Source of the DNA: Podarcis bocagei
Taxonomy: Eukaryota
DNA: 64,000 nucleotides
Strand: one strand, 5' to 3'
Assembly (NCBI GenBank): GCA_964188305.1
Contig: OZ076893.1
In this document: one piece after another, positions 13,400 to 64,000 of the stretch
Position numbering within the stretch: the stretch's first letter is position 1
Layout of the letters: each line of letters starts with the position of its first letter
Notes under the pieces: generated by a model
What the model saw: only the letters and a program-made list of their open reading frames with translations
Told to the model about the DNA's origin: nothing
Databases searched by the model: none
Made by a program: the position numbers and the translations under genes

Positions 13400-13955
13400 T
13401 TTTTATAATACCCTGAAATAAATCAGCTACTTAATCTAAAAAAGAACAAAGGCATAAATAAGAAAAGAAAAAGAAGACAATGCGAAAGAAGAAAAATTAA
13501 AGAATGATAAAGATAAAGACTTTCGATTCTTTGTCCTGCAGCTAAATATAGTACCCACTCATTAAGAGCCAACCATTCTATCCTCTGTAAACCAGTATTT
13601 TTTTCAATCTTCAAATCACTGTGCTACAAGTTCATTTTCTCTTTCACGCAAAAAGTCGGTAAGAAGTTTCCAGTCCTGAATAAATGTCAACAATTATTTG
13701 CCATCTCAGCCTAGTTTAATAACTTTATCAGCCAGGGCTGTATTTTTTCATCTTTGTGCATATAATAATCTTGCCACTGTAATCACAAATTGGAGTAATG
13801 TTCTATAATTCTTTTCTCGTTCTGTATCCGTTAACCCCAAAAGAAAGAGTTCCAGCTTCAATTGAATATTAACCTTTAAAATCTGCTGTATCAATGTATG
13901 CATTTGTAGCCAATATATTTTAGCCTTTTTACATGTCCACCTTGGAAGTACCATT
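13400..13955 (-). mobile_element. 5'-truncated L1-clade LINE fragment (ORF2 C-terminus and T-rich 3'UTR)
   Basis: Minus-strand translation WTCKKAKIYW...LFLLGL...ITVARLLYAQ, then FIQDWKLLTDFL, resembles the L1/Tx1 ORF2 C-terminal region; disrupted by stops. Confidence 0.7.
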
Positions 13956-14480
13956 CTGTGTTGGCAAACACATTTCTTGCCACTGGTCAGTGTCTGAAAT
14001 TATTCTTGCACAAAATCTTGATTGGGCAGCACAGGCTCTTGATGCACAACATTGATTTAACTTGACTGCTTTCTTAGTGTTGACCTATAGGTTCCCTGGT
14101 GAATTCCAAGTACCATTAGAAACAACTTTTCAGAGCATCAAATGAAAAGGGAGCTTCATTTACAAAAACAGCTGTTGCCAAGCAGGTTTAGGTTAGGACC
14201 ATGGTGCAGGAACGAAATCCAATCATTTGCTCCCATACTAGTTCCAGAAGCAGACCCATAAGCCTTCTCTTCCATATGTTCCCCAATATGATTCAGGGTC
14301 CAGTTTGGCATTTTTGGAGTGGCCTGGGATGATCTAGGCTCCAAACTGGTTTGTGGGCCTTTCATAGCCATGCAATCAGGGGACATGGGAAAGATATGCC
14401 TCCCCTCCCTCCTCTCTGGACCATGTATTTAATCAGGTTTTAGGACTTTGTGGTCAGGGGTAGGATGGAAGAGACATTTA

Positions 14481-15801
14481 CCGTATTTTTCGCCCCATAA
14501 GACGCACCGGCCCATAAGACGCACCTAGATTTTAGGGGGGGAAATAAAGGGGAAAAAATTTATTTCCCCCCCAGGTGCGCTGCGCTAATCCAGAAGCTTG
14601 GGGCAAGCTGAGGTCAGCGCGCCCCAAGCTTCTGCGTGCCGGCAAGCAGTCCGCTGCCGCCCCAAGCCTCCCGCACCCGGCAGGAGGTCCCGCTGGGTGC
14701 GCAAGGCTTGGGGCGGCAGCGGACTGCTTGCGCGCACCTAGAAGCTTGGGGCGTGCTGAGCTCAGCACGCCCCAAGCTTCTGCATGCTGGCAAGCAGTCC
14801 GCTGCCGCCCCAAGCCTCCCGCACCCGGCAGGAGGTCCCGCTGGGTGCGCAAGGCTTGGGGCGGCAGCGGACTGCTTGCGCGCACCTAGAAGCTTGGGGC
14901 GTGCTGAGCTCAGCACGCCCCAAGCTTCTGCATGCCGGCAAGCAGTCCGCTGCCGCCCCAAGCCTCCCGCACCCGGCAGGAGGTCCCGCCGGGTGCGCAA
15001 GGCTTGGGGCGGCAGCGGACTGCTTGCGCGCACCGAGAAGCTTGGGGCGGGCTGAGCTCAGCACGCCCCAAGCTTCTGCATGCCGGCAAGCAGTCCGCTG
15101 CCGCCCCAAGCCTCCCGCACCCGGCAGGAGGTCCCGCTGGGTGCGCAAGGCTTGGGGCGGCAGCGGACTGCTTGCGCGCACCTAGAAGCTTGGGGCCAGC
15201 TGAGCTCAGCCCGCCCCAAGCTTCTAGGTGCGCGCAAGCAGTCCGCTGCCGCCCCAAGCCTCGCGCACCCAGCGGGACCTCCTGCCGGGTGCGGGAGGCT
15301 TGGGGCGGCAGCGGACTGCTTGCGCGCACCGAGAAGCTTGGGGCGGGCTGAGCTCAGCTGGCCCCAAGCTTCTAGGTGCGCGCAAGCAGTCCGCTGCCGC
15401 CCCAAGCCTCGCGCACCCAGCGGGACCTCCTGCCGGGTGCGGGAGGCTTGGGGCGGCAGCGGACTGCTTGCGCGCACCGAGAAGCTTGGGGCGGGCTGAG
15501 CTCAGCTGGCCCCAAGCTTCTAGGTGCGCGCAAGCAGTCCGCTGCCGCCCCAAGCCTCGCGCACCCAGCGGGACCTCCTGCCGGGTGCGCGAGGCTTGCA
15601 GACACTCGCCCGAAGCAGGGGGAGCCCTCCAGAGGGCTCCCCGTGCTTCGGGCGACAGGCTGCCGCCCCAAGCCTCGCGCACCCGGTCGGACCTCCTGCC
15701 GGGCGCGCGAGGCTTGCAGGCATTCGCCCCATAAGACGCACCCCGATTTCCCCTTCATTTTTGGAGGGGAAAAAGTGCGTCTTATGGGGCGAAAAATACG
15801 G
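14481..15801. mobile_element. Non-autonomous Tc2/pogo-like DNA transposon (1321 bp) carrying an internal palindromic tandem array
   Basis: TA TSDs at 14479-14480 and 15802-15803. Perfect 27-bp TIR CCGTATTTTTCGCCCCATAAGACGCAC (14481-14507 / 15775-15801). Extra CCCATAAGACGCACC copies near 14511 and 15728. No transposase ORF. Confidence 0.92.
14592..15720. repeat. GC/CpG-rich 148-bp tandem repeat, about 7.5 units, each made of two hairpins
   Basis: AGAAGCTTGGGG...CCCCAAGCTTCT starts at 14592, 14740, 14888, 15036, 15184, 15332 and 15480 (exact 148-bp period). Confidence 0.95.
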
Positions 15802-18131
15802 TATATGCTGTCTGGGAGCATCCTTCTGCCCCACACTGTTTCTTGCTGCCAGACCATCTCCCCCCTTTTGACAGACCTAGATCACTCTGGGTGGATCTGA
15901 TCCAGAGTAATCTGGGACTGCTGAGAGTTCTTGTCCTATGTTATTTAACCCAAAGATGCTGAGGATTGGTACATAAATAGGGATGTTCCTGCTTGAAAGG
16001 GGGAAAGTAGCAGCATAGAGCAAAGCACCAGCAAGAAGAATGAAATCAACAATAATATAGCGAATAAATAAATCGGAATTGATGTCATGTTTGTGAAACG
16101 AGTGGAATGTTTGTCACACATAATAGGGTAGGTGTGAGCTCCTGCAACATTTTCCCCCTCACATCTTTTTTGGGGATTTTGTAGGATTGCAATGAACAAG
16201 CTACTCTGGGACAAGAGCTCACTAGCTTGGTTATCTTTGAGTTCTCACATGTTCTTGGCTTAATTTCTATCTTTGGTGACTATTTTTGGCTGGGTGAATT
16301 AAATGTTAATGTGGTTGGAGTGAGTGTCAAAAGTGTCCCACAATGGATTGAGATCATGAGCACACCAGATGTTTCACTAACATTATTTGCAGTGGTGTGC
16401 TAGAGTTTTATGCATGTCTCTTATAGGTTCTGAGTGCCTCGTTTTAGTAAGGAAGACAGGTCATGCTATACTTTCCTGCTACAGAATGTAAAGGTGACTA
16501 CTGTTCAGCTGAAGTTAAGTTCTGTATACAAAAATATAACAAGGGAGAAGAATCGCAACGCCTTATAGAAGATATGAGGATGAATTCTGAAGAGCTCTTA
16601 TGACTAAACCTAATGTAATTTACAAGAAGGATTGCCTTCAGGGAATGAATTGTAGATGCTTGGGTATTACAAGGGGGAGAGTAGCAACCGATATTTGGAT
16701 TACTTGAACCTTCGTTTTACAAAATGTCTGGAGGAGTTTGAGAGCTCTCATGCTTATGCCTCTTACTTAGTGCCCCAAGACAGATTGTACTCATGGAATG
16801 AAATAAATGAGAATTCCATGTGGACGTAAGTGACATCCTGGACTAGGTTCAATACAAAAGAAACAAGATCCTCTTTGAAATGGTGAGGTGACCATCCAGA
16901 AATGACAGCTGAGTAATTTGCCTTGTGATTACCTACTCATGTGAGTCATAGAGCATGATGCACACAAAACATTACTCATGTTTGAAAATCAATGGGTACA
17001 AAAATAAAGAGATGAATTCTAAAGCCAGATAAGACCCAGCTTTGCCAAGGCAAATCATACCACATCCTCCATTCTCCAATCTGCAAAGACTAGTAGTGTT
17101 ATAACAATGAACATGAAAAGTTGATAGAGTACTGTAAGTGTAATAATAAAGCGGTTGCTGCTACTAATTATTTTTAATTAAATAATAATTTTACACCACA
17201 GTTCCATATTAGCAAACCCTGGCTCACATTATCTCAAGTAAGCCTTTTAATACATCTCAACCATTTGTGGGTTTGCAAATTACAACAGCAATTTGGATAC
17301 AGGACAGAATCTTCAGCAGTTCCTCCTATGCCCTCTTGGCCAGAGGAAACGGCCCTTCTGCCATCAGTATCTGAAGACGAGCAGCATCTCCAACATTCCT
17401 ATCTTGTAAAAGGTTGTGATTACAGAACAAGGGATCCTGCCCCTTGTCCAGGCAGCTCCCACAGAAGGGGAGGTCTTTCCAGCTTTCAAAAGGCTCCAAG
17501 CAGCATCTCTGCTATGGCAACATCCCGTTATTACCCACAATGAAGAGTGGGAGGAAGGGCTATAGGCAGCAGAACTCACTGGGAGCTATCCATGGTCCTG
17601 ATAGGGCTGCCTGAATCTGGACATGCCTGCCATGTCAAGCTATAAGTTTCTTTTATATATAGCCTTGTAAATATGTCTTGTATGTTACAAACTTCTTGTG
17701 GGGTTTTTTAATCAGTGTTTCAGTTCGAAGAAGCACTGTGCATGCCCGTGCACTTAGAAATTGCAAGCCTATTTGTTTGCAAAGGAAGGCCTCCACAAGT
17801 CAGCCCACCTTTTCTACGAGATCCACCAAAACCGCTACCCAGTCTGCACCAAGTCCTACGCCATCAACCACTTCCCCAAAAGGATGGCATTGAAGACAGA
17901 CTTCTGTCTGTGACAATAAAGGGAATGCTAACTCACTTGTTAAAACTCGTCTGCTTGTAACAAATTTAATAGCCATCAGTAAGCACAAACTGGTTGTTCC
18001 TACATTTGAGTGTGGAATAATGAGGTTAAGCTAATGCAACTTCAATCAGAGCATCTCTCTTAAGTTCCCACCCTTTGCAGGAAGCTGCTGTCTCCTGGAT
18101 AAATTTAGAGCTGATTTCGTTGTGCATTGAT

Positions 18132-22433: not shown

Positions 22434-22511
22434 TTATACTTTCTTGTTCCATGGCACTGCTTTTACTCTGTAGAATTTTGTACCCAAAGGAACTTTAAAT
22501 CTGTTTTGTGC
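22434..22511 (-). CDS. RB1CC1: RB1CC1 coding exon 22 (terminal)
   Basis: AQNRFKVPLGTKFYRVKAVPWNKKV* (TAA at 22436-22434); 78 nt. Confidence 0.96.
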   Translation of the reverse strand, partial: AQNRFKVPLGTKFYRVKAVPWNKKV

Positions 22512-25500
22512 CTAAGCAAAAACAAAAACACACATATGCAAAGAATTATTTGAAATATACCAGAGCTAGTCAGAAGACAATACTTTTTCATCTCATTTAT
22601 TGGCAGACGTGGTTGAGCTGGCAGCTGCATGGCATTTCCGCTGTGAATGGGCAATGCAACTAAATCTACGCAATTTAACAGAATAAGATATTTAAGTGAA
22701 ACTGAATCTCCTTTTGAGGTAAATTACTATTTCACCATCTAGTGGGCTATGGGCAAAAAATGTAATTTTGTGACACCTCAAAGCACTTGCTTCTTGATTA
22801 GCTATTGGCAGCAGCTCAGCAAATTACTAAAGTACTTGCCCGAAGATAATTAAAAGTATTTCATGGTTAGCCAAGCTTTTAGACTTAAGAAGTTGATCCA
22901 GAGCACTTTCATAAAAAATAGTGTTGATGGCTATGATATGTGAGGGATGAATTAAAAAGTTAACAATTACTTTATTTTTCTGTGCATAAGACTAGGTTTT
23001 TCCCCTAAAAAATAATGTCAAAAATTAGGGGGCGTCTTATACAGAGATACATCTCCCCCCTTTTTTTTCTTAAATCTGAGTCCCCCAAAATAGGGGGCAT
23101 CTTACAGACTGAAAAATATGGTACTTTAAATATTACTCCTACAACTGAGTTTAAGTAGTAGATAGGTAGCCGTGTTGGTCTGCCATAGTCAAAATAAAAA
23201 AAATATATCTTCCAGTAGCACCTTAAAGACCAACTAAGTTAGTTCTTGGTATGAGCTTTCGTGTGCATGCACACTTCTTCAGATACCTATCTGAAGAAGT
23301 GTGCATGCACACGAAAGCTCATACCAAGAACTAACTTAGTTGGTCTTTAAGGTGCTACTGGAAGATATATTTTTTTTATTTTAACTGAGTTTAAAACAGA
23401 GTTATGAGTAAGAATGAGGGTAAAGTTCCCTCTTAACTAAAAGGAACTCTTGCAACTATTTTCAATGAGCCATGCTGAAACTGAATATGTATCCTTACCT
23501 TTTTTGCCTGACAATATTCCTTTTCCATCACTTTTCCCAACACCCAGGGTCTTCGAGATGCTCCTGAAGCTGGAAGGAGAATATTTATTACTTGTGGCAT
23601 GATAATATCCAAACTACTTTAGGCACAAAAACGTCCATGGCCATTTATCTAGCAGGCACATTATAATCTTAATTTTAACTATGTGACGGAATAAAAAACT
23701 TCCATATACAAAATGTTACCTCAAATTGGTACAATATTCTAAACTCACAATCTTGCATTTAAATTTGAAAAAGCGTAAATGAATTTGAAAAAGCCTAAAT
23801 GGCAAAAATGTTTATAGTGGCATATTGTCATCTTTTTGCGACATACAGTGGTACCTCTGGATACGAACGGGATCCGTTCCGGATCCCCGTTCGCATCCTG
23901 AAGTGAACGCAACCCATGTCTGCAGGTCGCGATTCACCGCTTCCGCGCATGACGTCATTGACTGTCTGCGCATGCTTAAGCGGTGAAACCCAGAAGTAAC
24001 GCGTTGCGTTACTTCCGGGTCGCCGCGGAGTGCAACCCAAAAGCGCTCAACCTGAAGATATTTAACCCAAGGTATGACTGTACTGACAAAAGATATTGGT
24101 TTATTGTATGGTGCGTAAGAGGGATCTACTCTCACCAAGGAGCAATAGAAGATAAAAGCAGGCAGGCAGCTCACCTTCATCTCTGCTACACTTCAGTTGC
24201 CCAACCCAGCACCAAAGAAAACTTCCTTAGGCAACTTTAAAGCTACATGGACATTAATTAGTGGGGCATACTTTGATTCTTCATCTTTTTCATTCCACCT
24301 TCCCACAGCTGTCAACTTTTCCCTTTTTTTAAGGGAAATTCCCTTATTCCGAATAGAATTCATCACAAGAAAAGGGAAAAGTTGACAGCTATGCACCTTC
24401 CTCAAATCCACCCACCCACAGATATTGCTTCCCTGCTACTCATTAGAGAAGCAAAGCATTAAACCTCCATCCTCAATGCTGCTCAACTAATCTGCACAGA
24501 ACACTTAAGTAGCAGGAGAAAAAAGACTGCGGCTACACCCTCATTCTCCCACTGCTCAGTTCATTGGCAGGAGAGGACACCACAAGCTGTATAAAATTAA
24601 AACAGTGGGCTGCACGTAGTATGTGGCAAGGGATTGACCACCTCTGTACTACAGATAGAAACAAAGGGTATGTTTCTTGGTACATATGCATAATGGCTGG
24701 CAAATGTGCACATTGCCCAGAAAATGTAAAAAATGCAGTTAGGTTGTATACAATGCCCCACTCAAATACCTTTGGAGATAATGCATGGAAAATATGCGTG
24801 CAAAATACTATCAACTTGTAAGCATTCAAGAAGTCCTGCTGGAAAGTATATTGACTGGGAAATGTGCACAATTCCCTCTTCATGTTTACATTTTTCATAA
24901 TACGTGGGAATCATGCACTAGCCAGCGGTTATATATATACTGGCCCCAACACGTATATGTAATACATGCATTCACATGTTCAAACATAAATTTTAAGCAG
25001 ATTATTGCAAGACTGAATATTTAAATGCACCAGAAGAACATTCTCTCCAGAGTTATGACACTTACCACACTCACCTGGTTTGAGATCCAGTGCAGCAAGA
25101 GATTCTGAGTGTAAGAAATACAAAGTTGGGCTAACAGTAAATAATACATAGTTGTCGTGACGTTCATCCAAAATAATGAGAACCAAATCGCCAACCTGAA
25201 AACTGGATAAAAAATACAAGGCTCAGAAGAAAAGCAGCACGATTGTATTTTTGTTTACTCAGAGGAAAGCCCTACTAAGTTCAGTGGGCTTCCTCCTAGG
25301 AAAGAGACCACAAGATTGCAGCCTGCGTCATTATGCCCTTTACACACTTTGGTGCCGTGATATGCTTTTGAGGCATTATGTAGTTTTTGCTTTCACCAGC
25401 TAGGTATGGACATGCTGCCAGAATCGAGGACTTTTGTGTTGAACCAAAGGTGAAATGTTCTGGAAGGCCTGCAGACACTGTCTTGGTAGTCAAGATAACC

Positions 25501-28500: not shown

Positions 28501-31500
28501 TTGTGAAATAATTAAGTTACTGTTTTCCCCTTGTGAAACTTCTGTTACTGACAAAAAACGGTCTTTAAATCATACATCCAACTGCCAAATGCTCTCTTGT
28601 AGCTTTGTTATGTTCAGCTGAACACAATTCAATATAAGATATATTAGACTTCACATGAGGGAAAAAGGAAAGTTTGCCATTAAATGAAAGTTTGGCTACA
28701 AACATTTAGAAGCAAGTTATTTATATCAGTGAGACGTACTTTTCAAGTAAAAATGGATAGGATTACGTAGGATGGTAGTCAACTCAATAACTGCACTCAC
28801 ACAAGGATTACCATTAACACAATGGGACTATGAGGGTTATGAGAGCCTCAGATCAGATTTAGGGGGTATACAAGGGGAAGAGAAGGAGAGAACATTCTGT
28901 TCTGCTGTTGGAATGTTTACTGCAATACTATGTTGGATCCAACCAATAGTATTTTAGAATGCCAGTGAAAAGTATCTCCAGTGAAAACTACTTTTTTACT
29001 GCACTTCAACATCATTATTATGCAAAACTATTACTGTATCACTGATTCTTAGTTACAAAGTAATTAGAAACCTTCTATAATACTTCTATTCCAATGAAGT
29101 GGTTACAAAATCTCATTAAAGAAACCAGGCAAGACTCCAGCTTGCCTGCTGAATATTCTCTGTTTTGCAGAGCCTTTGGGGATGCATCAATAGCAGGAGT
29201 AGCCAAAGTGATTTCCTCATGATTTTGCTGGACTATCATTTCCATCAGTCCCAGGCAACATGGCTGACTGACTACAACACTCATCATCCCTGACCGACTA
29301 CATCTGGAGGGTGCTATGCAGGTTACCCATTCTAAGGCATGTTCTCTATACTCCCAGCACTCCTTGATGGCTGTACACTGTGGGGAAGGTTCAGCAATGA
29401 GGGACAAGCCTTCTTGAAATAATCTTTAATCAAGAATGATTTAATCAATTGATCAATCAAGTCTACTGCCAACCATCCCTAAATGAACACCACTGCATAC
29501 CTAGTCAAAGTCCTTTACACAAATCACAAACAGAAACATAAATAAATCTAATAAACACTCGCAATGCTGCAATACCAGCAGCTTTCATGAGTGTTATGTG
29601 TTCCAGATCCCCATGTAGCCACATCTCTCCTGTTATGACATCATGCTTCTAGACTAATGCATCACAATTCTAGATCATACATCTTGGACTAGATCAGCTC
29701 CTAGCAACTCCCATGGAACTGCTTCTGGCAAGGTTGTTACTCACTATATATTGCTAGCTTTATTTTCAAGCAATACACACACACACACACACGAACATAC
29801 ATATGAATAATTTCCCCTGTTTCTTTGAAAAACTACTCCCATCCTCAAATTCTGAAATATCTTAGATTTTTTTAAAAAGAGAGAAATCAAATAAACAAAA
29901 AGGAGGAATATTTGCTCTCCCCACCACTTTGAAAGTATTGGTTTAATTATTATTTTTTACTCCTCAACAGTTTTCTTGGGCCTCTCAATTACAAGGATCA
30001 TCACATCCAAATGTAGCCTGGCTGAACGCTGTATTATAAAGGCATACCCTCTTGAGCTAAGTCTCATTGCCACAAGCCAAGAGTGGCAAAAACCTACCTG
30101 TTTAACCACATTTGTTTTCTAAACACATAATTTTGTTATATGCTTACCAATCTTTGATTAAGCCTCTTATTTTCCTCCTCTTTCAACTGCAACGTCTATA
30201 AAACAGCATAACACAAACCTTTCAACATTTTGTTTAAATATAGTTTTACATATATTAGTTTTATAACTTCATATGCATGTTTTCAATATTTTAAGACTGC
30301 AATTCTATACTTATGTGGGAGAGGATGGCTCATTTATCTCAGTGCGACTTAAATTCTGAGTAAACATGTTTAGGATTGTGTTGCTAGAGGCTCAATTTTT
30401 TAAAAACACTATAGATGTAAGTATGTGTGTGCGCGTAGCTAAGTGTATAACCCACACTTATTTATTGTGCCACATTAGTGGGTTTGAATATGTTTCAGAT
30501 CAGATTTGGCCTACTGAAACAGAAATTCATACCAGCTGTGCCCTCTATTAAGTATGAACTCAAATAATGGTGTTCATAGCTGAATCATTTTTCTTCCAAG
30601 TAGTTACATACAGTGGTGCCTCGCAAGACGAAAAGAATCCGTTCTGTGATTCTCTTCGTCTAGCGTTTTTTTCGTCTTGCGAAGCAAGCCCATTGACGGA
30701 TTAGCGGATTAGCGCTATTAGCGGCTTATCTGCTGATCGGATCAGCTGATAAGAGGCTTAGCGGCTTAGAAAAAGGGGGGGAGGAAAAAAAACCAGCAGG
30801 AACTCGCAAGACATTGTCGTCTTGCGAAGCAAGCCCATAGGAAATTCGTTTTGCGAAGCACCTCCAAAACGGAAAACTCTTTCGTCTAGCGAGTTTTCCG
30901 TCTTGCGAGGCATTCGTCTTGCGGGGCACCACTGTAACTCGGAAATTCAGCTTTGATTTCGTGAAAGTTAAATTTTCTCTCATTGGCTGGGAAAGAAGTT
31001 GCATGATAGAAGAAATTCTCAAATCTTTGATGCTGTTAAATTAATTTGGCCCATGGTGTCCGAGCTTCCACGACACGTCCCAACTGCAATTTATGACCTG
31101 CAGTCTGAGGGCAGGGGAGGAATTTGAAAACAGTCATCTCTACAGATGAGCTCTCCCACCAGCACCACACCAGCTTTGACTGGAGGTGGGTGAGATCCAA
31201 GTACTCATCTTCCCTTTTTTACTGGCATATGGCTGGGTAGGCGAGATCTGTATTACAAGTTTAAAAACCAGTCAACACATCTATAACCAGTCATTGTTTG
31301 ACATCTTTTTAATTACAGGTGTTAGGGATTAAACCTGGTGCTTTCTGGATACAAAGTATGTGTTACATCCCTGAGTTTTCTCAGTAACCTATGAAATGTG
31401 TATTAATTGGAAAGCCAAAGTAACCACAATAATTCCTATGTTTCTAGTTTTAACGGGAATCAGTTTAAATGTCCTAATATAAAAGGGTAGTATTGACTCT

Positions 31501-40500: not shown

Positions 40501-43500
40501 CTGAAAAATGGACTGTATTGAGGCTTGGGCTTCTACACTCTCCTCTCCCTAACAAAAATAACAGTGGTTCCCTGTGACATCCAAACTCAAATAAAGGTAG
40601 TTTGTTTAAATGACAGCTTGAGAAGCCACAGTTTAACCTTTGCTTATTTTCATTAACCAAAGTTTAAAACAAATTACAGTTCTTAAGAGTTCTGAAGATA
40701 CTGTTTAAATTTAAACCAGAAGTTTTTGATCTCCTTTTATGGGTAACAAGAGGGGTGGAGAGGGAGAACCAGGCCTATGTGGAGTGTTCAAATTCCATCC
40801 ATCAATCAAAAGTTCAATTTCACTCTTGGATGGGGCAGCTTCAAAATCTTTTTTTAAAAACCTAATTCCTAAAAGATATCTGGGGAATAAATGAGTCCTG
40901 TGAATAGGAACAAAAACAAGTGCCACGGTTTTTAAGCAGCCCTATAGTTATATTTTAAGAGCACTTTTGTGTAGTATTTTGTCCTTGGTAAACTGCCAGA
41001 CTGATTTTTAAAAACTCCCCCATGCTGCTTTTCCATTAAAATCAAATTTTAAAAAGCCAGAATCTCAAATGATAAAACTCAGTGACTCTTAAAGCTATTT
41101 GTGCGCAGCCAGAAACATTGTTATGAATATCACTTTATGCTGTCAATGACTGATGTTTAAAAACAGAAATATTCTTCCATCATTCACTTAAGGAATTCAG
41201 TCTGCTCAGCTTGGACAGATGTATCACTTCCATCTGGCATTCAGTGCAAACTCCCCTTCATGATCAATAAACATTATGAGCTGGATCCAAAGGTTCCCTT
41301 TCACTATGTGGAGAATTCCTTTACTAGAAAAATGAGGGATTCTGCCCTATCAATCAAAAAGAATTTTGAATTTAGATGTGACAGTTTTAAAATAATGCAC
41401 ATTGTGCTTAAGTAATGCTGCAAGATTGTGTGAAGGTGCTTCTCTTATCCAACAACTTTTCACCCTAGGGGAAAGGTAATTTTTAAATTCTTTCTTACAC
41501 ACAGCTTGTGTTTAACATAGGGACTCCAATTTCATGGGGTGATTGATTGATTTAGGTCCACCTATCCATTGGAAGATAAAAAAGAAAAGATCTACACCCA
41601 ACAGGATGATGTGAAAAGCCGTATTAAGGAGGTTTGAATGAAGTCCTCAACTCAGGAGCTTGAACTATCTAAAAAGAAGCAGAAAAGCTCAGCATTTTTG
41701 CAATTGCAATGTATACTTACTAGCTTGAATACAGAAGTTCAATAGAAAAAGAACTACGTGCTCCTGAGCATAAGTCATATAATGATGGAATTAGGGATTG
41801 GTTTGAGCGAGGGGAAAGGATAAACACATCTAAGGAGACAAGATGCGTCTGAGCAAGAGCAGGAACCATTAATCCAAGAATAGAGAAAACCTTCTATAGT
41901 TTGAGATTGCACTTACTCAACTGACTACAAATTATATTAAGCACTGTTGGTTTATTTTATTTCATACATTAGAGGGCAACTTAATTCATACAGTACCTCT
42001 GATTAACTTGCATCTCTAGTTGCTGGATTTTCCCCAAAAGTTCTTTTTCAACAGCTTCCCTTTGCAATTCAAATTCTTTAAGGGCATTTCGGACTGCATC
42101 ATCTTTTTCACAGTTGAGCTTTTGAACAAGCAGTTTCCTGTCCTGTTCATGGTTAGTTAATAGTAGCTCTTTTTCTTCTGCAAACTTACTGATAGTGGCT
42201 TCATATTTCTTTTGCTGTTCACACAATACCAAATTTTCTTCTTTTTGCTTTTCTAGGGCACTGACTTCCAATTCTAGCTTACCTTGCAACTCTGTTATTT
42301 GTTCTTCCAATCTTTTTTCTGCTTCAAGAGCTTGTTGGTGCAAAGAAGTTACTTTACTTAATTCAGTTCTAAGCAAATTTGTTTCTTCTTCATGCCTATC
42401 AATTAATTCTGAAATGCACTGATCTTTCTCAATTGTCATTAAAGTTCTTAGCTCTGCTAGACCCACCTGATATTCATCATTATTAATTTGTATTACATGG
42501 TTCAAATTATCAATCTGTTTTCTTAACATTTCAGTTTCCTTGTCAATAAGACTTTTTAGATTATCTTGCTGTTGAGTTTTGTTTTCTTCTAAAAGTATTT
42601 TCATTTCATCTGTTTCTGCCTCTTTCAGTGCAAGTTCAACCTCTAATTTGCATCTTAAGTCAGACAGTTCAGAAACCTTGACCTTTAATTCCTCAATCTG
42701 TTGTTCTTTCTCATGGACATTTGCAGCATGAGTTTCTTGCATTTGTTCAAGTCGGAGTTTATTCTCCTTTTTCAACTCCTCTAAGCAATCATTGTGTTTA
42801 GCCATTAGTTCATCAAATTCTTGTGTATGTCTTTCCTGTAGATTGGATTCCAGTTCCTTTAAGTGATCTTGCTCCAAAGTCTGAAGTTCTGCTCTCAGAA
42901 GCTGCATTTTTTCATCGTTTTCAGTATGAAGTTTTTTCAAACTCTCCATCACCCTTTCACGTGACTCTCTTAGTTCTTTAATTTCACAACTCTGATTCTT
43001 CATTTGACTTTCCAATTCAAGCAATTTTTGCTCCTTTTCATTTTGTAAAAACACAACTGCTTCCTTTTCATTCTTTACTATTGCAAATTCATTATCTTTA
43101 TCATGCAAAACATCTTCAAGACCTTTTAAGTCACCTTTTAATTTTGTGATCTTTTTTTTGTTCTCTTCACCATCTTCAACTAAAGTATTCATTTTGCTTT
43201 CATATTCAGTTTTTACCAATTGCAGCTCTTTCTGGTGTTTATCTTTTAGCGTTTTTTCAAGAGAAAATTTTACTTTTTCTATAATATTCTTTATTTCTAT
43301 TGAAGTACATTTTAAAGAACTGGAAAGGTCACATTGTTCTTTTTCTACAAATGTTCTAAAATGACAAAGGTCTTCTTTTATGTTTATTAAATTTAACCGA
43401 GATTCCTCGGCAACATCTCTACATTTTTCCATATAAACATTTAAAGCAGAATTTTCTAAAGCTTCCGCTTTTGCACATATATTTGTATCTTGCATCCGCC

Positions 43501-46500
43501 TGCTGTCAATTGCATTGATGACTGAGGAATAGAGAGACTCCACCATCATTTCTGGACTTTGAGGATCACTTATCACATTCGGTGACGTTAGGTTTTCTTC
43601 TATTATGAACTCATTAACCGCTGACATAAAATCAGATTCTGGACTTTCTGCCAGTGAGTCCAAGTCTAATGACCCTTGCTTAAGGGCTTGTTCAATGCTT
43701 GGATGGGCAATCGTTTCAAAATCAAATGTATGAGCATCAATACTGTCTGGAGACAATTCTTCTAAAGGACCTGGGGGGCACACAGGAGGGCACAAAGGAC
43801 CATGAAGACTGAGTGGTGGAGGAGTTCTAGGAGAGGTAGCAATTGTTGTACTTTCCATCCTTGGTGTAGTGACAGACTGTGGTGAGGCTTGACTGTTGGA
43901 AGCCTAGAAGTATAAAACACAGGCCAGAGTTAAAATACTATCGTTCCATAAACATAAACAATTCCTAAGATAGGCCTCGAGCGGGCTCCATACATGTGGC
44001 AGGATTTCACATTAGAGAAGCAGGAATTCATAAAACCTTATGACATCTTACTGGCAGCTATAGGTAGCAGAAAGTAAAACCATGGTTAATCCAGGGCACA
44101 CCAGCAAATCTCATTTGATGCATCTTCTGAAGCTGCCTCATTCTTGCATCCCATCAGAGTTCCTTTCATTCTGTTTCATCCTTACTGTTCCTAGCTTAAT
44201 TTTTCTCCCCCCCTCTCCACTTTTATATCGTTTCAGAATATTTGAAACGGACAGTATTTTATCTGATAAAACATAAAGGAATTTCTAAACAACTTTTTTC
44301 CTGCTTGCATACTTTGGAGAAAATAACCCCCCTTCCAAACTGTCCAAAAATAAATTGGTATGCTTATGCTCTATTTCTGCGTGGATGTGTGTGCATAGTA
44401 TGCCGAAGTAAAATGGGAACTATTTTTACTTCCTTTCTAAAAAGGGCCTGGAAACTATATGCTTGTTGTACTAAAAATAAATGTTTTTATATGTATTGAG
44501 AACTAACATCAAAACCAGTGGGGTTTACTTCTGAGTAGACTTGTAGAAGACTAGGAATTCTAATCTGAGGTAGCCATAATGCTATTTGTGGCAGGGCAGC
44601 CTTTATTCTGAATCAGTTAATTGAGAACATTTTTGTCTCTGGCTCCATCGACTACCAACATGCAACCCACAACATTAAAAAACGTTGCCCACTCCTGTGC
44701 TAGAACATTATGTAGTAAACTGGTCATAATTAGTGTATGATACAGGTCCTGAAACACTTGTCAGATGGTAAATTACATTACTCTGAATTACCGGGATTTG
44801 CCCGTTTACATGCATTTATAGAAGTACAATTTTATTTAATAAGTGAATCACATAACACAAAGATATGAATGGAATCTAGCCATGATCACGCTCTAATTTC
44901 TACCTTAGTTTCTTTCAAGCTGTATCTCCTTAAATTAATTGTTTATTCAGGCTTTATGCTGTGTTGACAAAACAAGGTGCAAAAACTGAGTTCAGAAAAA
45001 GCACACTATAACTAAGAAGTGGATTCTGCTTCATTATCACATTTTCTTTCCATTCAATTAGTATTTTAAAGAAAAATATTTCCAATATTAGCCATGCAAG
45101 CCTAATTTAGGCTTGTAGCAAAATGCTTCCCAGTTAATATCAATAGTAAATTCCCAAGAAAAAATCTCCTGAGAATCAGAAATATGAACAGAAGCAGCCC
45201 CTATAACAATGCACTGAAAAAGAACACCAAGATAAATATTTTACAAATTTTCTCCTTGATTTAAGTCTCTCCATATGTTACCTTTCCAAGAAGGGTGGTG
45301 TAATAAACAATCAAAGGACGGACCCCTGATGAGGTGACAAGCTCACGGATTTGCAACAGATGCTTTCAGAAATACATAACTGACACTTAACTATGTTTAA
45401 ACCTGAAACGTTTTGTGATTAAGTATGTTACTTCAAATAAATGTTGTGAATAAGAGGTCCTAGGTACTTCAGAAACCCAACACTTAAGCACCACAAAATA
45501 TCTTTGGAGGTTAGGGAAAGCAACTTTTAGCTGACTGTTCCAGTATGTCCAATAAGTTGTGTTAACTTTACAAAAAATAGGAAAGCATTTAAAAAGGTCT
45601 GTTGTTTGGCAAAATGCCAAGATTTAAAGGATCAAACCCTCCTAGTTTCTCAATCAAAAATTTTAGGGCAGTTGACTGCGATATTATATAAAGTATGGGC
45701 AATAAGCTGCCAACTGCAGGCAGTTTGCCTTCTTGTAGAGACACTCCACAAGAAAAATTTACTGAAAGTTGGGTGCTCTCAGGAAAGGCCGGGAAACTGA
45801 GAAGCAACTTTTTTTTGTTCTTGTTCACAAAATACATTTCTCAGAAATATTCCTCACCGATTCACTTCACAACTTAGTTAATTTCTAAGTAATTGTGTTT
45901 AGGATTGGCATTCAACAATTTACCCATATATAAAAGTCACACATATAATACAATGGTACCTTTTGTTCATTCAGCAGATCTGTAATGGTCTGTGACATTT
46001 CATCCAAACTTTGTGCTGCTTTGACCAGATTATGTAGAGCAAGTACATGCTGGTGGAGAGGTTCGAAATCACAAAGTATAGGAACCCTTAAAAATACAGA
46101 GTAATTAACACAGATTACATTAAACAGATATTAACAGATTACAAGTGTTAACTGCATTTAAGAATATTTATATATAAAAATATACCACTTAGCATATTCA
46201 AAATCTTTAAGTAGTTTAGCGGTCATGGGGTTGGGTGAGTCCCACGTTGGGCAAACATTGCAAGGGGTTTGGACTAGATGACCCTCGTGATCCCTTCCAA
46301 TTCTACAGTTCTATGATTCTATGATTTACATAAAACAACACAATATTCAACAAAATTTCCAAACTCTAAGTTAAAAATGACAAAACACAACTGTATTATC
46401 ACAGATAAAACCAAACCATGCACAAAACAAAAATATACATAAAAATCAAGAGCCAAGAGTCCCAAAAGACATTTTAAAGATGTTTAAAAGTTCACAACTG

Positions 46501-49500
46501 TCTCTGTCTTACCAGTTATTCAAAGGAGGGCAATCCTGTGCTATCATGAAAAGTCCTGCTGCCACAAAAGTGTTCAGTTTGAACCCTAACTGCTAAAGAT
46601 CAGGGATTCTAATACATAGCCTCTAAAACTAGGTCACCAAACCATACAAATACCTGGCCAAAGGAAATAAATGAATACTATAAAGCAAGGCTAGCTATGG
46701 CAGATATTATTTTTTTCTCTGAGCCACCTTACTACAATTTTACTAGTTTATTGTTATGGGAACCACTGCCAATCTACTACAAATTGCCCAGAGATCTAGC
46801 AGTAGATCCCAATCTATTTTCTGCTTGCCCACATGCTTAGGAACTCATTTTACCTGAGTAATGGTTGGACTTCTGAAGGACAAAAGGACTGCAAAAATTG
46901 CAGATCGGATAATGAGATATCAGGAAGTTCACCATCAAACCTGCGAGGTTTTCGGGTCTGTATGTAAAACAAATCAATGAGAACACGATAAATAGCAAAA
47001 TAGATTGGACAACTGAGATATTTTTTAAGCCCGTAAATAAAGACCATTGAGATATATTTTAATTTCCATTTATCAGTTGAAAGACTGTGCAGGGAGCTTG
47101 AACGTCTCCTAATCACTAAAACAGCTGCAGCTGAAAGTAGGAACATCTGAGGCTTGTAAACAAATCTACAAAAGTAGCTTGCCCACAAATAAATTTGTTA
47201 AACAAATGAGCAGATATTTCTAAGAAAATAGTATTCAAGGTTTGAGAAGCTTCCCAACCTGGTTGCTTCTTCTGTGCCTCAGACAGGGTAGAGACTATTT
47301 ATAAGCCTGAAATATTTGTCTACACTTTTAAATGAAAATATACACAGAAATGGTTACACTTGATGAAAGATAACTAATCTATGCTACCAGAGCAATTATT
47401 CTAGGGAAAGTATAATATTAAATCAAGAGGCAGAGTAATCATTCTATGCCACCAAGAATCTAAATACCCCCTTCTTCACAAGCCAGTTAATACAAAAAGT
47501 AGCTACACACTTCCTTCTAAATTCAAATTATACTAATTCCTCAAAGTGTTTGGGAAAAGCCAAAAGTCTTCATTAAAAATAAAAAGTATGGTATACTCAC
47601 ACAAAAGGATGGGGGCCAGGCATCAAGTCCCCTGAACAAACGATTTCTTAGAAAAGATTTCCCTGTTCAGAGAAATAAATATTATTTCATTTATTCACAT
47701 ATGTGTATATGTATGTGTATGTCTCTATGTGTGTGTGTACACACAACAAAACAAACAACAATGGGGGAGGATTTTTTGGGGGAGGGGGGAATGAGCCCAA
47801 TGCATTTCCTAACAGTTCTTTCTCAGGACACTATTAAGAGGAACAATATAGAACTACATTGCAAGTTATTTGTGCAAATTTAACAGGGACAATTTCCTTT
47901 TATTTTTTCCATGTATACCTATAGATCTCCTTTTTTCAACTTTTACATAAAAGGTTATTTCATTGTATAATTCAGGTGAGGGGTGGGAGAGAAGGTCCAA
48001 GGGCAGCTGTGAAGAATCTTTGGCCCTCCAGGTGTTGCTGAACTACAATTTCCATCTGCCCCAGCAAACATGACCAAAAGTGATGCAAGCTGTAGTTCAG
48101 CCACAGATGGAGGCCCACAGGTTCCTCACACCTGGCCTAGGGCAATAAAGCAAAGGGAAGAAAGGAAAGAGAAGGGATGGTGGTAGTTTTCAAAAGCATG
48201 AAATGATCTAGTTTTTATCTGCACACAACTAGTTCAACATAAGGAAACAGTCACAAAATGCTGCAATTTAAAATAGTCTTTACATGGTAGCCACAATGTA
48301 TGACCTAATTATTATTCAGAGATAAAAGTGGTGTGTGTATCAATGTTACAGGTTTAAGAATGAGAGTGAGAGAGAGAAAAAATACTTACTAAATAACTTT
48401 CCAAAAGATTCCCTTTTGGCCTTTTCTGCATCATAAAGATGTTTCCCATCTTTTATTAAAGCAGCAGCCCACTATAAGAAAAAATATATATTTATATTAA
48501 ACATACATACACAGTCATGTTCCCTCCTCTAGTCTTCAATCTGAGATCTAGGTCCTGTACTCAAGTTGCTTACCTCCCTGTAGTGTTTTACAAACATCTT
48601 TCTCCTTACAACTTCAACAACAGCCAAGCAGTACATCTGAGGGACATTACTAAGCTTTTCTACAATCTTCACTCTTTCTAGCAGCTCTGTTACGAGACGA
48701 AGCAACGCTTGAAGTTTCTCTCCATCCTGGTCAGCATGAAGCATTACAAAGCAGCACCACCTATGGAATGCAAAGTTTCACTGTAGCATACTGAATTGTT
48801 AAGAGCAATAAAATTTCTCCACCAGATGCTTCTACCAGAACCTCTGTTTCCAGAATTGTATCAGTTTGCTCATTTGTAAACAAAAGAGAAGTTCTCTGTT
48901 CATTTTCTGCCAAAAACCAGAATATAATACAGAATGCCAAAAACCATCTCTACAAATCTACCTATATTTGCTTATACGGCATATTGGTCAAGCTTCAATG
49001 GCATGGTAAAAATACAAAAACAAAACACGAGATTCTCATACAGTTGATTTAGGCATCGCGTACCAAGTTCAAGATCCCAGAACTGTCCCAATAAGTCACA
49101 TTAACAAAATTAAATCTAAATTCAGGTTTGACTGTCAGATATGAACTAAATATATTTCTTGCACAAGACTAAAAGCAAGCCCCCACCCAAAAAGAGATGA
49201 GCGAACTTTACAGATATCTCCAATCTTAGCACCTAGTACTTAGATTGGTGATAACAGATCTTTATGCTTGACATAGCAGGCCATTTAGTTACTGACCATT
49301 ACGAAGTGGAGGCTTCCCATCCCTGCATAAAAACATAATTTTAGAAGCGTTGCATGCATGACAGGCTGGTGACAAAAAAACAAAACAAAACAAAACATGG
49401 TTGAGGAGCATATAGCACTGCAGCAGCATCACTTACTTCAGCCGGACTTGTAGATTATTTGCAAGTTCTTGTTTGGCAGTAGTACATTTCTGTTTAATAT

Positions 49501-52500
49501 CTAAAAGTTTCCGGTGGTTAGTTAACATAATCATCAATTGATTTGCATGACTCAAGCACAAATCAGGTAATACAGAAGGATCTTTCAAGTTCTCTGCTCT
49601 CTTCTGATTAGCCAAAAATCCCTATAAGAAAACAGATTTAAAATTCATTGTTATAGCAAGATATGAAAACAAAAGCAGGACAAAAACACTGCCTTTTATA
49701 AGACATCTGAAGGCAGCCCTGTTTAGGGAAGCTTTTAATGTTTAATAGACTATTGTATTTTAATATTTTGTTGGAAGCCGCCCAGAGTGGCTGGGGAAAC
49801 CCAGCCAGATGGGTAGGATATAAATAATATATTATTATTATTATTATTATGCGTGGTCTTCACAGCACATCACTTAATTATAATACATCTGAATGCTCCC
49901 TGATAGCCCAGATCCATGCATATACCAAAACCAAGCTAAACAGTGTTAGTTATTTGAGCTGTCACATTTAAAACAAGATATTGTGCATTTTATAAAGAAA
50001 CACAATTCAACAGACAAAGTAGGACTCGAACAACGGCTTCAAGTTACAAAAAAGGAGATTCCGACTAAACTTTCTGCTGGTAAAAGCTGTTTGACAGTGG
50101 AACAGATCCCCTCGGAAAGTGGTGGACTCTCTTTCCTTGGAGGTTTTTCAGCAGAGGTTGGATGGCCATCAGTCATGGTTGCTTTTGTTGAGATTCCTGC
50201 ATTGCAGGGGTTTGAACTAGATGACCCTTGGGATCCCTTCCAACTCTACAATTGTCTATTTCTATGAGCTTGATGTTTCATTTGTAACCCATGCTGTGAC
50301 ACTGAAATGATGATGGGTGGTATAAAAATGGAAATTAATACATATTTATTTATTTATCTTGTCAAATGTTCTGCGCCAGCTTCATATACACAAACCAAGG
50401 ACAAGAACACTATTCAGATCATTTAGTACTCCATGCAAAATGGGCACATCTTCTGCAAACCATAACTTAATTACTGGCCTAGAGTAAAAAACCTCATTTG
50501 TTAAAACCTACTTATATAACTGCATGACATTAAAATAGAACATCGGTCAACAAGACTAACAAGCCATACTGTTTTGTCACGCAAACTGCTAATTTTAAAA
50601 CATATTTTTCCTACTGTTTCAAGGACCTTGCTCCATTTTAGTGAATTATTACTAAAAGAGTTTCAATTATGTTTTTACTTCTGCTACAGGGCAATCTTAT
50701 GCCTACTCAGAAATAAGCCCCACTGAGTTCAATGGTAGTCCCAGGTAAGCATGTACAGGACTGTGGACACAGCTATATAATGAAATTGCAAACTACAAAA
50801 ATTCTGCATCTTATTTACATGAAGTAGCTTTTTAAAAAATAATAATGATCCATGGTTAGCTTCAAAGGTAGCCAACAATAAAAATTTTAAACCACAAAGC
50901 AATAAAAGCAACAAGAATAAGACTGTCCATTAAAAACTAAGGAAAATATTATTGTCTTCTTTTAGTGCCAAAAGGTAGTGAAGTGGGCAGTAATGAAATG
51001 TTTAAGGAAAACATTGCACCATCAAGTGGGAGTCGCCACTGAAAAAATACATTGGACAGCTAGTAAACATGTGGAACTACATATGAAATCATTTTATATT
51101 TATGAGGTGAAGCTGAATATTTGTCTTCAAGAATTATGTCCCACATAGTGATTTCAATTAACACAAATAGTGGCTGTTGAAAGCTACACACAAGAGTGTG
51201 TCAGCTGTGGACACAGCTGTCAATGGCAGGATTGCTAGCACATAACCAGCTGATCGTTTGACTCCTTCAGAACTTCAGATGTCTCTACATAAATATGGGA
51301 AAAGGCATTGTATTCTACATATAAAAATGGCTGGATTTTGAATAAAATATAGCTCTTTATATTCATAATACAAAGATTTCAAAGAAAAGCAAACAATCAA
51401 CACTGTATTCTTTCTAGTGACAGGCTTCAACCTTTTTATTTGCCCAGGGATTTTAAATTGCTGTACTTTTAACTGGCTGAATACAGTGGTACCTCGCAAG
51501 ACGAATGCCTCGCAAGACGAAAGTTTTTCGTTTTTTGAGTTGCTTCGCAGGACGAAAACGTCTTGCAAGTTTGTTTCCTTTTTCTTAAAACCGTTAATAC
51601 CCAGGGAAACCGTGCTTCGCAAGACGAAAAATTCGCAAGACGAAAAAACTCGCAGAACGAATTAATTTCGTCTTGTGAGGCACCACTGTAGTTTATTCCT
51701 CTCAATTTTCCTATATTTTTGTTTCACAACTTTTAAGTTTATTTCAATATTGCATTTAATTTTTATGTATGCCACCTGAAAGGCATTTTCAGATAAAAGA
51801 TGTGATATATGCATTATTGAAATAAACACAACCAAATGAAAGTAACAAAATGAAAGTAAGTAGCACAAACATCTCTTCAGCTTTACATTTGATTTAGGAG
51901 TTGAGCGGAAGTAGCCTTATTATGCATTGCCACCTACTGACCATATTGATGAAAATCTAATGGATGAATTTATTTATAAAATCAAGAACTTATTTTTATT
52001 TTCACTCTATGTCATGCACAACACACACAGCTATGTGGAAAATTAAAATAATATTGCCAGCATTTATTAATGGATCCCAGTTCCACAAACAGGATCCAAT
52101 CCAGTTCACAGCCAATCGTTCTCCCTGCTTTGAGGCAGCAGCTTCAACACACCCTCCTCTCACAATAAACCTATGTGGCTCAGGGTCACTGTGACAGAGA
52201 AATGTTTATCAAAGAGTAAAATCAGGTAGCTTAAAGCAAGCAATTAATTACAGTTGCTACAGGAGCAACAAAGGTGGGGGTTATGGGAGTGAGAAACTCG
52301 AATCCCAATTGTGCTATAATATTGTAACCTGCCCTGGGAACTTAGGGTGAAGGACACGAAATAAACAAAATAAATAATGGCAACAGTGCTGGAGCCTGCT
52401 TCACTTCCAAGAAAGAGAAATGCAGAGAACTGGCGCCACAGCATGCTTTACAGCAGGGGCACATGGCACCATCAACAGATCTTTATCCACAAATCTCAGT

Positions 52501-62879: not shown

Positions 62880-64000
62880 GAACAAATCCAAGAGACTATG
62901 TGGTTAAATGTCAAGAACACCGTAAACTGCAACGAGTCTTTTTTAGAAAAATGGAAGCACTGTTCAAAAGAGGTAAATTAACCAGACTGCTTACTGTGGC
63001 AAATACAAGTTGAAGCAAGCAAAAAAGATGAACAAGGGTATTTAAAAAAACCCCACAAACACTTAAGTTAAGATATTAAGTGCAGGAAACCAGTAAAGAG
63101 GCAGTAAGAACCTTGGATAGCAAATGGGTGAAAGAACAACTGTAAGAAGATTGGAGACTGCAGCAAAACAAAATGTGTTGTTTCCACTAGTTTTCATTGT
63201 AAAAAATGCTGATGAGAGTTCCAGTCAAACCACTCCTTTCGGGGAAGAAAGAGCCATGCCAAATAAAGCTGCTAAGCAATCTCATTATAAAGCTAAATGT
63301 CACATTAGAAGTTTAACAGATCACTGGAGCAAGATAGCATTCATCCAAGACAGGCATAGGCAAACTTGGCCCTCCAGATGTTTTGGGACTACAACTCCCA
63401 TCATCCCTAGCTAACAGGACCAGAGGTCAGGGATGATGGGAGTTGTAGTCCCAAAACATCTGGAGGGCCGAGTTTGTCTATGCCAGAGCCAAGGCTTCTT
63501 TACAAACTCAAATGTGAAAAGTGCCAAATTTTCACAAAGAATGCAACTTATTAAAACCAGAATCAGAGGGTTAGAAGGCTATCAGTGTAATTAATGCCAG
63601 TATTTAAAGGGAATTTAGCAAATTACAGACCAGTAGGCCTACATGATGTTCTAAGTAATTAGAAGAAAGCATGATTAAAGCTAGGACATTAAAACACCTA
63701 AAAGCATAAGTCTTGTTAAAGACAAGTCAGCATGGCTTCTTCAAAGAGCTTCTAACTTGCCACTTCTATTTCAGAGTGTCACAAATATATAGATTGGGGT
63801 AATCAGCTAAATTTTATGTACCTGGAACATCCACAGAGCTTTTTATACACTATTCAAGTGCTTCTGAGCAAACTGAGCAGCCAAGAAACAAGATCAAGGG
63901 GTACTCTTACAGGTTGAAAACAGGTAAAAGGACAAAATGGCTGGAAGAGACATTTTTTTTACAAGGAAGGAAAATAAGCAGTAAGGTCCTCCAAGGATTC
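62880..64000 (+). mobile_element. Heavily degraded CR1 ORF2 (RT) remnant, interrupted by a MITE
   Basis: Decayed CR1 RT-like motifs: RKP.KEAV (~63084), NYRPV.L (63620), SQHGF (63726), YL (63818), GPPR near GVPQGS (window end); many stops and indels. Confidence 0.65.
63351..63486. mobile_element. Palindromic hAT-type MITE inserted in the CR1 remnant
   Basis: CAGGCATAGGCAAACTTGGCCCTCCAGATGTTTTGGGACTACAACTCCCATCATCCCT with its reverse complement; imperfect 8-bp TSD ATCCAAGA/AGCCAAGG. Confidence 0.85.

Follow-up and report, generated by a model that had tools for sequence, protein, structure and literature searches.

A 64-kb stretch of Podarcis bocagei contig OZ076893.1 (GCA_964188305.1), hereafter the window, carries at 14481-15801 a segment of 1321 bp that is bounded by inverted repeats, is filled with tandem hairpins and differs sharply in composition from its surroundings. 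The questions it raises are what this segment is, whether it is a genuine insertion, and where its repetitive interior came from. The initial annotation, made from the letters alone, had read it as a young non-autonomous transposon that carries an acquired array as cargo. I consider it highly likely that the segment is a young non-autonomous DNA transposon from a very high-copy, TA-targeting MITE family of lacertids in the Tc1/mariner/pogo group, and that its own hairpin interior was amplified. Frogs, clams and flies are known to have elements of this kind, and the present one is not a new kind; what is new here are its empty site, the apparent heterozygosity for the insertion, the probable internal origin of the array, the reversal of the array's polarity and the high-copy family itself.

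Structure and coding capacity of the element

The 27-bp terminal inverted repeat (TIR), CCGTATTTTTCGCCCCATAAGACGCAC, occurs in two exact copies in the 64-kb window (27 of 27 positions, 0 mismatches) and was matched in 0 of 100 shuffled sequences, and a TA stands directly outside either end, as the initial annotation had described (Table 1). GC content is 0.70-0.73 within the element versus 0.32-0.48 in the surroundings, and the observed-to-expected ratio of CpG is 0.77 over the whole element versus 0.20 and 0.29 in the two 5-kb flanks and 0.26 in the whole window, which bears out the earlier description of a GC- and CpG-rich interior in an AT-rich, CpG-poor region and fits a young age. Tandem Repeats Finder delimits the array at 14592-15598 (1007 bp), with a period of 148, 6.8 copies, 95% matches, 0 indels and a score of 1608. 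With a GC content of 0.72 and a CpG ratio of 0.73, this array passes the CpG-island test of Takai and Jones (at least 500 bp, GC of at least 0.55, CpG ratio of at least 0.65), and the element as a whole contains 18 GGGCGG boxes, 14 HindIII sites and 6 SacI sites.

Open reading frames of 90-174 amino acids are numerous in the element, on both strands and in all frames, because the GC-rich repeat is poor in stop codons. No Pfam domain was found in the four longest of them and no transposase reading frame within the 64-kb window; the element encodes nothing, its reading frames are artefacts of the repeat, and the earlier statement that a transposase gene is absent holds. An Rfam identity was rejected as well: the 162 matches are to generic miRNA-precursor or hairpin models, fall on both strands and are all below the gathering scores, and they arise because the hairpins are perfect.

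Outside the array, the left part of 111 bp and the right part of 203 bp are dissimilar beyond the 27-bp TIR. Copies of the motif CCCATAAGACGCAC are present at both sides, two as direct repeats at the left and two at the right that form a hairpin, and the 12-mer CATAAGACGCAC was found four times where 0.11 occurrences are expected, all four inside the element. Each side also has hairpins of its own (Table 1). At 15688, within the right part, the C of the assembled copy is a minority letter, as the family has a G there at 98% of the depth.

Table 1. Features of the element at 14481-15801 and its older relative, in window coordinates; folding energies are for predicted structures
Feature	Position	Strand	Remarks
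TA target-site duplication, left copy	14479-14480		directly outside the TIR; two letters shared at the empty-site joint
Left 27-bp TIR	14481-14507	+	exact
Subterminal motif CCCATAAGACGCAC, second direct copy; candidate inner transposase-binding site	14510-14524	+	12-mer CATAAGACGCAC four times in the element
AT-rich hairpin closed by G7/C7, left subterminal	14535-14572		-14.8 kcal/mol, z -3.8
A-type units 1-4	14592-15183	+	95-99% mutual identity; the four 34-nt cores vary at one position
B-type units 5-7 (2.8 units), opposite polarity	15184-15598	-	cores match the reverse-complemented A core
Core loop of hairpin H5, best pivot of the higher-order palindrome	15262-15295		centre 15278/15279
GC-rich hairpin Q, unlike the array hairpins, in the common interior of the family	15598-15663		-34.8 kcal/mol, z -9.5
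Truncated H-like hairpin, single, with its own core at 15676	15659-15716		from inverted-repeat comparison; high family depth
Right end: terminal hairpin of the inner motif copy (15727-15741, +) with the right TIR	15717-15801		-32.4 kcal/mol, z -9.1
Right 27-bp TIR	15775-15801	-	exact
TA target-site duplication, right copy	15802-15803		directly outside the TIR
Old relative, 152 bp, TA-flanked, array-less, CpG-decayed	22970-23121	-	72% over 69 nt; aligns to both element ends

Empty sites and insertion polymorphism

Logan contigs of four public runs from three species (X1, X3, X4 and X10) were compared with positions 13900-16400. In X3, which carries the species label of the best-matching run X1 and stems from another sample and another study, a single contig of 2658 nt passes from 14478 directly to 15802 at a depth of 11.8, equal to that of its flanks. 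The same transition is made in X4, from a second species, by a single contig of 2663 nt at a depth of 18.1, again the flank depth. This joint skips 1323 bp, which is 1321 + 2, the two letters TA fit either side of it, and it is without footprint; the insertion entered ACATT-TA-TATGC as one piece of 1321 bp and duplicated the TA. The check for an empty site that had been proposed along with the initial annotation therefore returned a single TA both in a further individual of this species and in a different species, and the reading as a young, non-autonomous TIR transposon with a TA target-site duplication stands. A composite of two MITEs around a satellite was considered and rejected, as the empty site shows that the entire 1321 bp entered as one unit.

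In X1, one contig also crosses the empty joint, and on one haplotype the flanks of this run show 0 differences to the assembly. A second haplotype is seen at 16100-16153, 300 bp from the insertion, where four SNPs occur within 54 bp (depths 15.3 and 23.3) and where the non-reference letters are those that are fixed in X3, X4 and X10. This is most simply explained if X1 comes from the assembled individual or a close match to it, is heterozygous for the insertion and carries it on the reference haplotype. As the non-reference letters are fixed in the other three runs, that haplotype would be locally diverged. Because contigs of other individuals cross the empty site and X1 appears heterozygous, the insertion is a genuine, derived event that is still polymorphic, and the exact TIR borders together with the TA duplication also argue that it is no artefact.

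Directly to the right of the insertion site, at 15832-15915, word depth is raised to approximately 3-5 times that of the flanks in X1, X3 and X4 and to approximately twice in X10. This suggests a low-copy repeat at that position, which may explain why a contig of X1 breaks there.

Other copies of the family

The bins that hold the element ends reach a summed word depth of 2.4e5 to 1.36e6, compared with 11.8-35.8 in the flanks. Over the four runs and three species this amounts to 15,000-48,000 times the flank word depth for the end bins (15,000-26,000 times for the bin with the left TIR); summed word depths cannot be read as copy numbers, and the values of single bins are distorted by contigs with two possible placements. 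The family is thus very abundant and common to three species of the genus. On each side, 54-111 contigs per run leave the element for unrelated AT-rich sequence precisely outside its TA, before 14479 or behind 15803, the count behind 15803 being 93-111 in every run. As the TA is thus conserved outside both ends in more than 100 other copies per run, its duplication is a property of the family.

The interior is also shared among copies, although to different extents. Hairpin Q with the last core (15580-15747) reaches, in X1, approximately 10,000 times the depth of the flanks, and the bins of the array reach hundreds to thousands of times that depth. In one contig of X1, 14574 is followed after four extra letters by 15658, and this indicates a member of approximately 240 bp without the array. 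At another locus, found at single-copy depth in X1 and X3, the module of Q plus core is tandemly duplicated, and the contig goes back 114 letters, the period of the duplication being 117 bp. An array between MITE ends is present, and its content may vary among copies, to judge from one short member, the duplication of Q plus core, and differing inner hairpins.

Within the window, the initial annotation had pointed to a relative of approximately 150 bp with similar ends and no array. Its flanking TA and its alignment to both ends in reverse orientation (Table 1) confirm this, and, with the CpGs of its ends decayed to TpG/CpA, it is an older relative that lacks the array.

Searches elsewhere were negative. 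The 100-amino-acid translation of the array had no match in the protein database, Logan lizard contigs included, and the exact TIR (with one R degeneracy) had none in JGI metagenome contigs and none in IMG/VR viral contigs. In the literature on Podarcis and lacertid MITEs, on DNA transposons of squamates and on the HindIII and GC-rich satellites of lacertids, the family, its TIR and its unit were not described, and the TIR strings retrieved unrelated primers only.

Class of the element and age of the insertion

The TA duplication places the element in the Tc1/mariner/pogo (ITm) superfamily, and no finer; Tc2/pogo, to which the initial annotation had likened its ends, is a candidate subgroup. 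It has the 2-bp TA target-site duplication and the inverted termini (27 of 27) of that superfamily, and the absent coding capacity and the high copy number with homogeneous ends of a MITE. MITEs are usually shorter than approximately 800 bp, and at 1321 bp this copy exceeds that size; it is an expanded derivative, since both the member of approximately 240 bp and the relative of 152 bp exist.

Mobilisation would occur in trans, by a transposase of the Tc1/mariner superfamily with the 27-bp ends and the four CCCATAAGACGCAC copies as its binding sites, and the arrangement of these motifs would be comparable to the paired binding sites of Tc1-like elements of the IR/DR type. More speculatively, the self-complementary interior could collapse into a cruciform or hairpin and keep the ends close despite the 1.3 kb between them, which may be the reason that a member of this length still transposes. 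A Helitron or Helentron, as a possible carrier of tandem arrays, was rejected on the perfect TIRs and the TA duplication: such elements have no TIRs and no target duplication, insert between A and T, and have a 3' hairpin with a CTRR end.

A different class is suggested by the inverted arms made of tandem repeats and by the capacity of the entire element to fold back, which recall the Foldback (FB, MULE-related) superfamily rather than a Tc1/mariner-type MITE. Foldback elements, however, have long TIRs whose tandem repeats reach the termini, and a target duplication of approximately 9 bp, whereas here the duplication is a 2-bp TA, the inverted arrays are internal and flanked by unique, non-repetitive subterminal sequence and short 27-bp TIRs, and array-less members with the same ends exist; membership of that superfamily is very improbable. 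There is an equally slight chance that the insertion is old and that the empty alleles are precise excisions. Excision does occur in cut-and-paste elements, but that of Tc1/mariner elements normally leaves a footprint, and the empty alleles of two species have a clean single TA. Moreover, the TIRs are still identical at 27 of 27 positions, the CpGs are undecayed, and the empty haplotype carries nearby SNP letters that are common to all other samples.

Anatomy and polarity of the array

The 148-bp unit consists, in this order, of a 42-nt palindrome P, an 8-nt linker a, a 90-nt nested hairpin H and an 8-nt linker b, which agrees with the palindrome and hairpin that had been recognised from the letters. 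P is perfect in units 2 and 3, and H is built of an outer stem of 28 bp, an inner stem with imperfect pairing and a core of 34 nt. As single-stranded DNA, the unit has a predicted folding energy of -84 kcal/mol (z -15.5), P of -25.2 kcal/mol (z -10.4) and H of -55.8 kcal/mol (z -12.4), and each value was equalled by 0 of 200 shuffles. The 10-mer GCTTGGGGCG is common to the arms of P and H, which suggests internal duplication followed by divergence.

The units do not all point in the same direction. Unit 5 begins a run of opposite polarity (Table 1), in which the cores match the A core at 0.97 (33/34) as reverse complement and at 0.74 directly, P6 and P7 match the reverse complement of P5 at every position, a b-type linker stands on either side of H, and units 6 and 7 are identical, direct duplicates. 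A scan of all possible centres places the best pivot at 15278/9, in the loop of H5, where the arms differ at 6 of their first 148 nt and agree at 94.4% over 320 nt; a pivot in the middle of P5 (15204/5) is almost as good, and centres inside the A-type part reach only 86-87%. The entire strand is predicted to form a single long fold-back of -812 kcal/mol, and with the reversal of polarity this substantiates the foldback-like structure that the initial annotation had ascribed to the element.

As the B-type units, with b-type linkers on both sides, are not a simple reverse complement of the A-type units, more than one event is needed. Together with the direct duplication of units 6 and 7, the linkers imply one or more inverted duplications pivoted on a hairpin, followed by one or more tandem duplications. 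The probable course is that one module pair, the 42-nt palindrome and the 90-nt nested hairpin, was amplified from 148 bp to approximately seven units, with growth probably by tandem duplication through slippage or unequal exchange, and with at least one fold-back inverted duplication, by snap-back or template switch, that took the hairpin loop at 15278/9 as its pivot and would thereby have reversed the polarity. Such snap-back or template-switch synthesis at a hairpin could take place, for example, in gap repair following excision. The low depth of the bin 15328-15411 might have pointed to a private unit variant; this was dismissed, because units 6 and 7 do not differ and any contig with two possible placements may have been assigned to the other copy.

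Origin of the array

The filled allele, the number and order of units and the polarity switch are known from the assembly alone, as contigs built at k=31 break in the repeat. Palindromic repeats at 72% GC are error-prone for polymerases and assemblers and no read-level record spans the array, so that its length or the polarity switch could reflect mis-joined or collapsed long reads within an otherwise real insertion. However, I regard such an artefact as quite improbable, given that the unit boundaries keep a perfect 148-bp register with 0 indels, that the differences between A and B form a coherent set rather than noise, and that the borders are exact TIRs with TA. Somewhat less improbable, though still unlikely, is that an ancestral MITE of approximately 150-250 bp took up from its host genome a GC-rich satellite, or a piece of a CpG island, that already existed there, which is how the initial annotation had understood the array. 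The old relative in the window is without a GC-rich interior, the composition of the array is sharply unlike that of the AT-rich subterminal parts, and a capture of tandem repeats has been proposed for miDNA4 of Xenopus, according to the account in the review PMC12628747. Against this, the core and its flanking AAGCCT/AGGCTT stem recur once in the non-array part at 15659-15716, where a depth of approximately 10,000 times that of the flanks marks this part as the standard interior of a young subfamily; the short member that joins 14574 to 15658 contains just this non-array hairpin part; the 10-mer shared by the arms of P and H suggests internal duplication and divergence; the array units themselves stand at hundreds to thousands of times the flank depth; and a host source was not found. 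The term acquired cargo was therefore not supported, although a capture when the young subfamily originated keeps some small probability.

Because core and stem recur once in the high-copy non-array part, and because the arms of P and H share GCTTGGGGCG, the array is most simply explained as amplified hairpin material of the element's own family, with the truncated H-like hairpin at 15659-15716 as the likely seed module. The further suggestions that the interior is expanding and that CpG-island-like arrays are being dispersed are plausible.

A more tentative idea, which I hold to be rather doubtful, is that GC-rich palindromic modules are interchangeable and spread between lacertid MITE copies, and even between TIR families, by hairpin-primed template switching in the course of gap repair ('hairpin accretion'). 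Hints in this direction come from contigs at 14655 in three runs, which keep the outer stem of H and then continue into a different inner hairpin, and from the tandem duplication of another module at a further locus. If true, a still-active Tc1/mariner system would keep producing CpG islands that are portable and prone to form cruciforms, and would spread them through the genome of an amniote.

Comparison with known elements and significance

Stowaway-type MITEs of plants are mobilised by mariner elements and produce a TA duplication. They resemble the lizard element in their short TIRs, TA duplication, very high copy number and insertion polymorphism within species, and differ from it in being shorter than approximately 500 bp, AT-rich and without internal arrays. 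MITEs with internal tandem repeats are well documented (PMC9659126, PMC12628747, PMC3879986, PMC4079207), and the closest analogues are miDNA4 and Xmix/Xstir of Xenopus, DTC84 of a clam and Tetris of Drosophila. In Xenopus tropicalis, miDNA4 is a Tc1/mariner MITE with an internal satellite (Scalvenzi & Pollet 2014, as cited in PMC12628747 and PMC9659126). It is likewise a TA-type MITE of a vertebrate, and as summarised there its satellite-like monomer occurs singly or as an array of variable length, whose growth these two accounts ascribe to errors of replication or repair. The likeness is one of structure, and relative to what these summaries give for miDNA4, the lizard element is distinguished by GC-rich nested palindromes, the reversal of polarity, a demonstrable insertion polymorphism and an amniote host. 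For Xmix/Xstir in Xenopus laevis, MITE-only, array-only and composite forms are reported within one family (Hikosaka & Kawahara 2004, via PMC9659126 and PMC12628747); according to the same summaries, Xstir was derived from TIR-related sequence, unlike the array in the lizard.

DTC84 of the clam Donax trunculus and the pearl MITEs of bivalves are also high-copy composites with central tandem repeats and conserved ends, but they belong to another phylum, have other ends, and no nested palindromes with a polarity switch are described for their repeats (PMC3879986). Tetris and other Drosophila foldbacks share the arms of inverted tandem repeats, the non-autonomous nature and the potential to seed satellite DNA (PMC4079207). 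In the foldbacks the repeats are the long TIRs themselves, whereas the lizard element has short unique TIRs and subterminal regions around its inverted arrays, and a TA duplication.

The coexistence of filled and empty alleles within a species indicates very recent transposition of the Tc1/mariner type in a lacertid lizard, and recent DNA-transposon activity is uncommon among amniotes. This copy may be seen as a clear snapshot of how the hairpin of a MITE can give rise to a tandem array in its interior. The polarity switch points to fold-back synthesis, and this signature makes models of satellite birth from transposons testable in a vertebrate with population data. As the array passes the CpG-island test, the element contains 18 GC boxes and the neighbouring gene is RB1CC1, the locus also offers a natural present/absent allele for effects on methylation, chromatin and fragility.

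Locus context and other repeats in the window

RB1CC1 exons extend over 22437-47660 on the minus strand, where a reading frame of 625 amino acids (41981-43858, minus strand) and seven further exons match this gene. Given this orientation and the position of the last coding exon (22437-22511), the element is not intronic and lies downstream of the gene, approximately 6.6 kb from the stop codon, probably in intergenic DNA. The old relative, in contrast to the element, is located within the last RB1CC1 intron.

Several other repeats were observed in the window. A second TA-flanked, Tc1/mariner-like MITE family, with the TIR CAGTGGTGCCTCGCAAGACGAAAA, is represented at 30607-30790 and 51540-51690; its motif CGCAAGACGAAAA is repeated three to four times subterminally and it has a terminal hairpin, an end architecture like that of the element's family, and the copy at 30.7 kb contains small internal palindromes. 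A hairpin at 63353-63484, with 56-nt arms that are 96% complementary and a 20-nt loop, has a weaker relative at 47997-48141 and probably represents another palindromic MITE family that is common in squamates. Finally, a near-perfect palindrome at 23187-23386, with 99-nt arms that are 99% complementary and a 2-nt spacer, lies in the last RB1CC1 intron, where it adjoins the old MITE relative.
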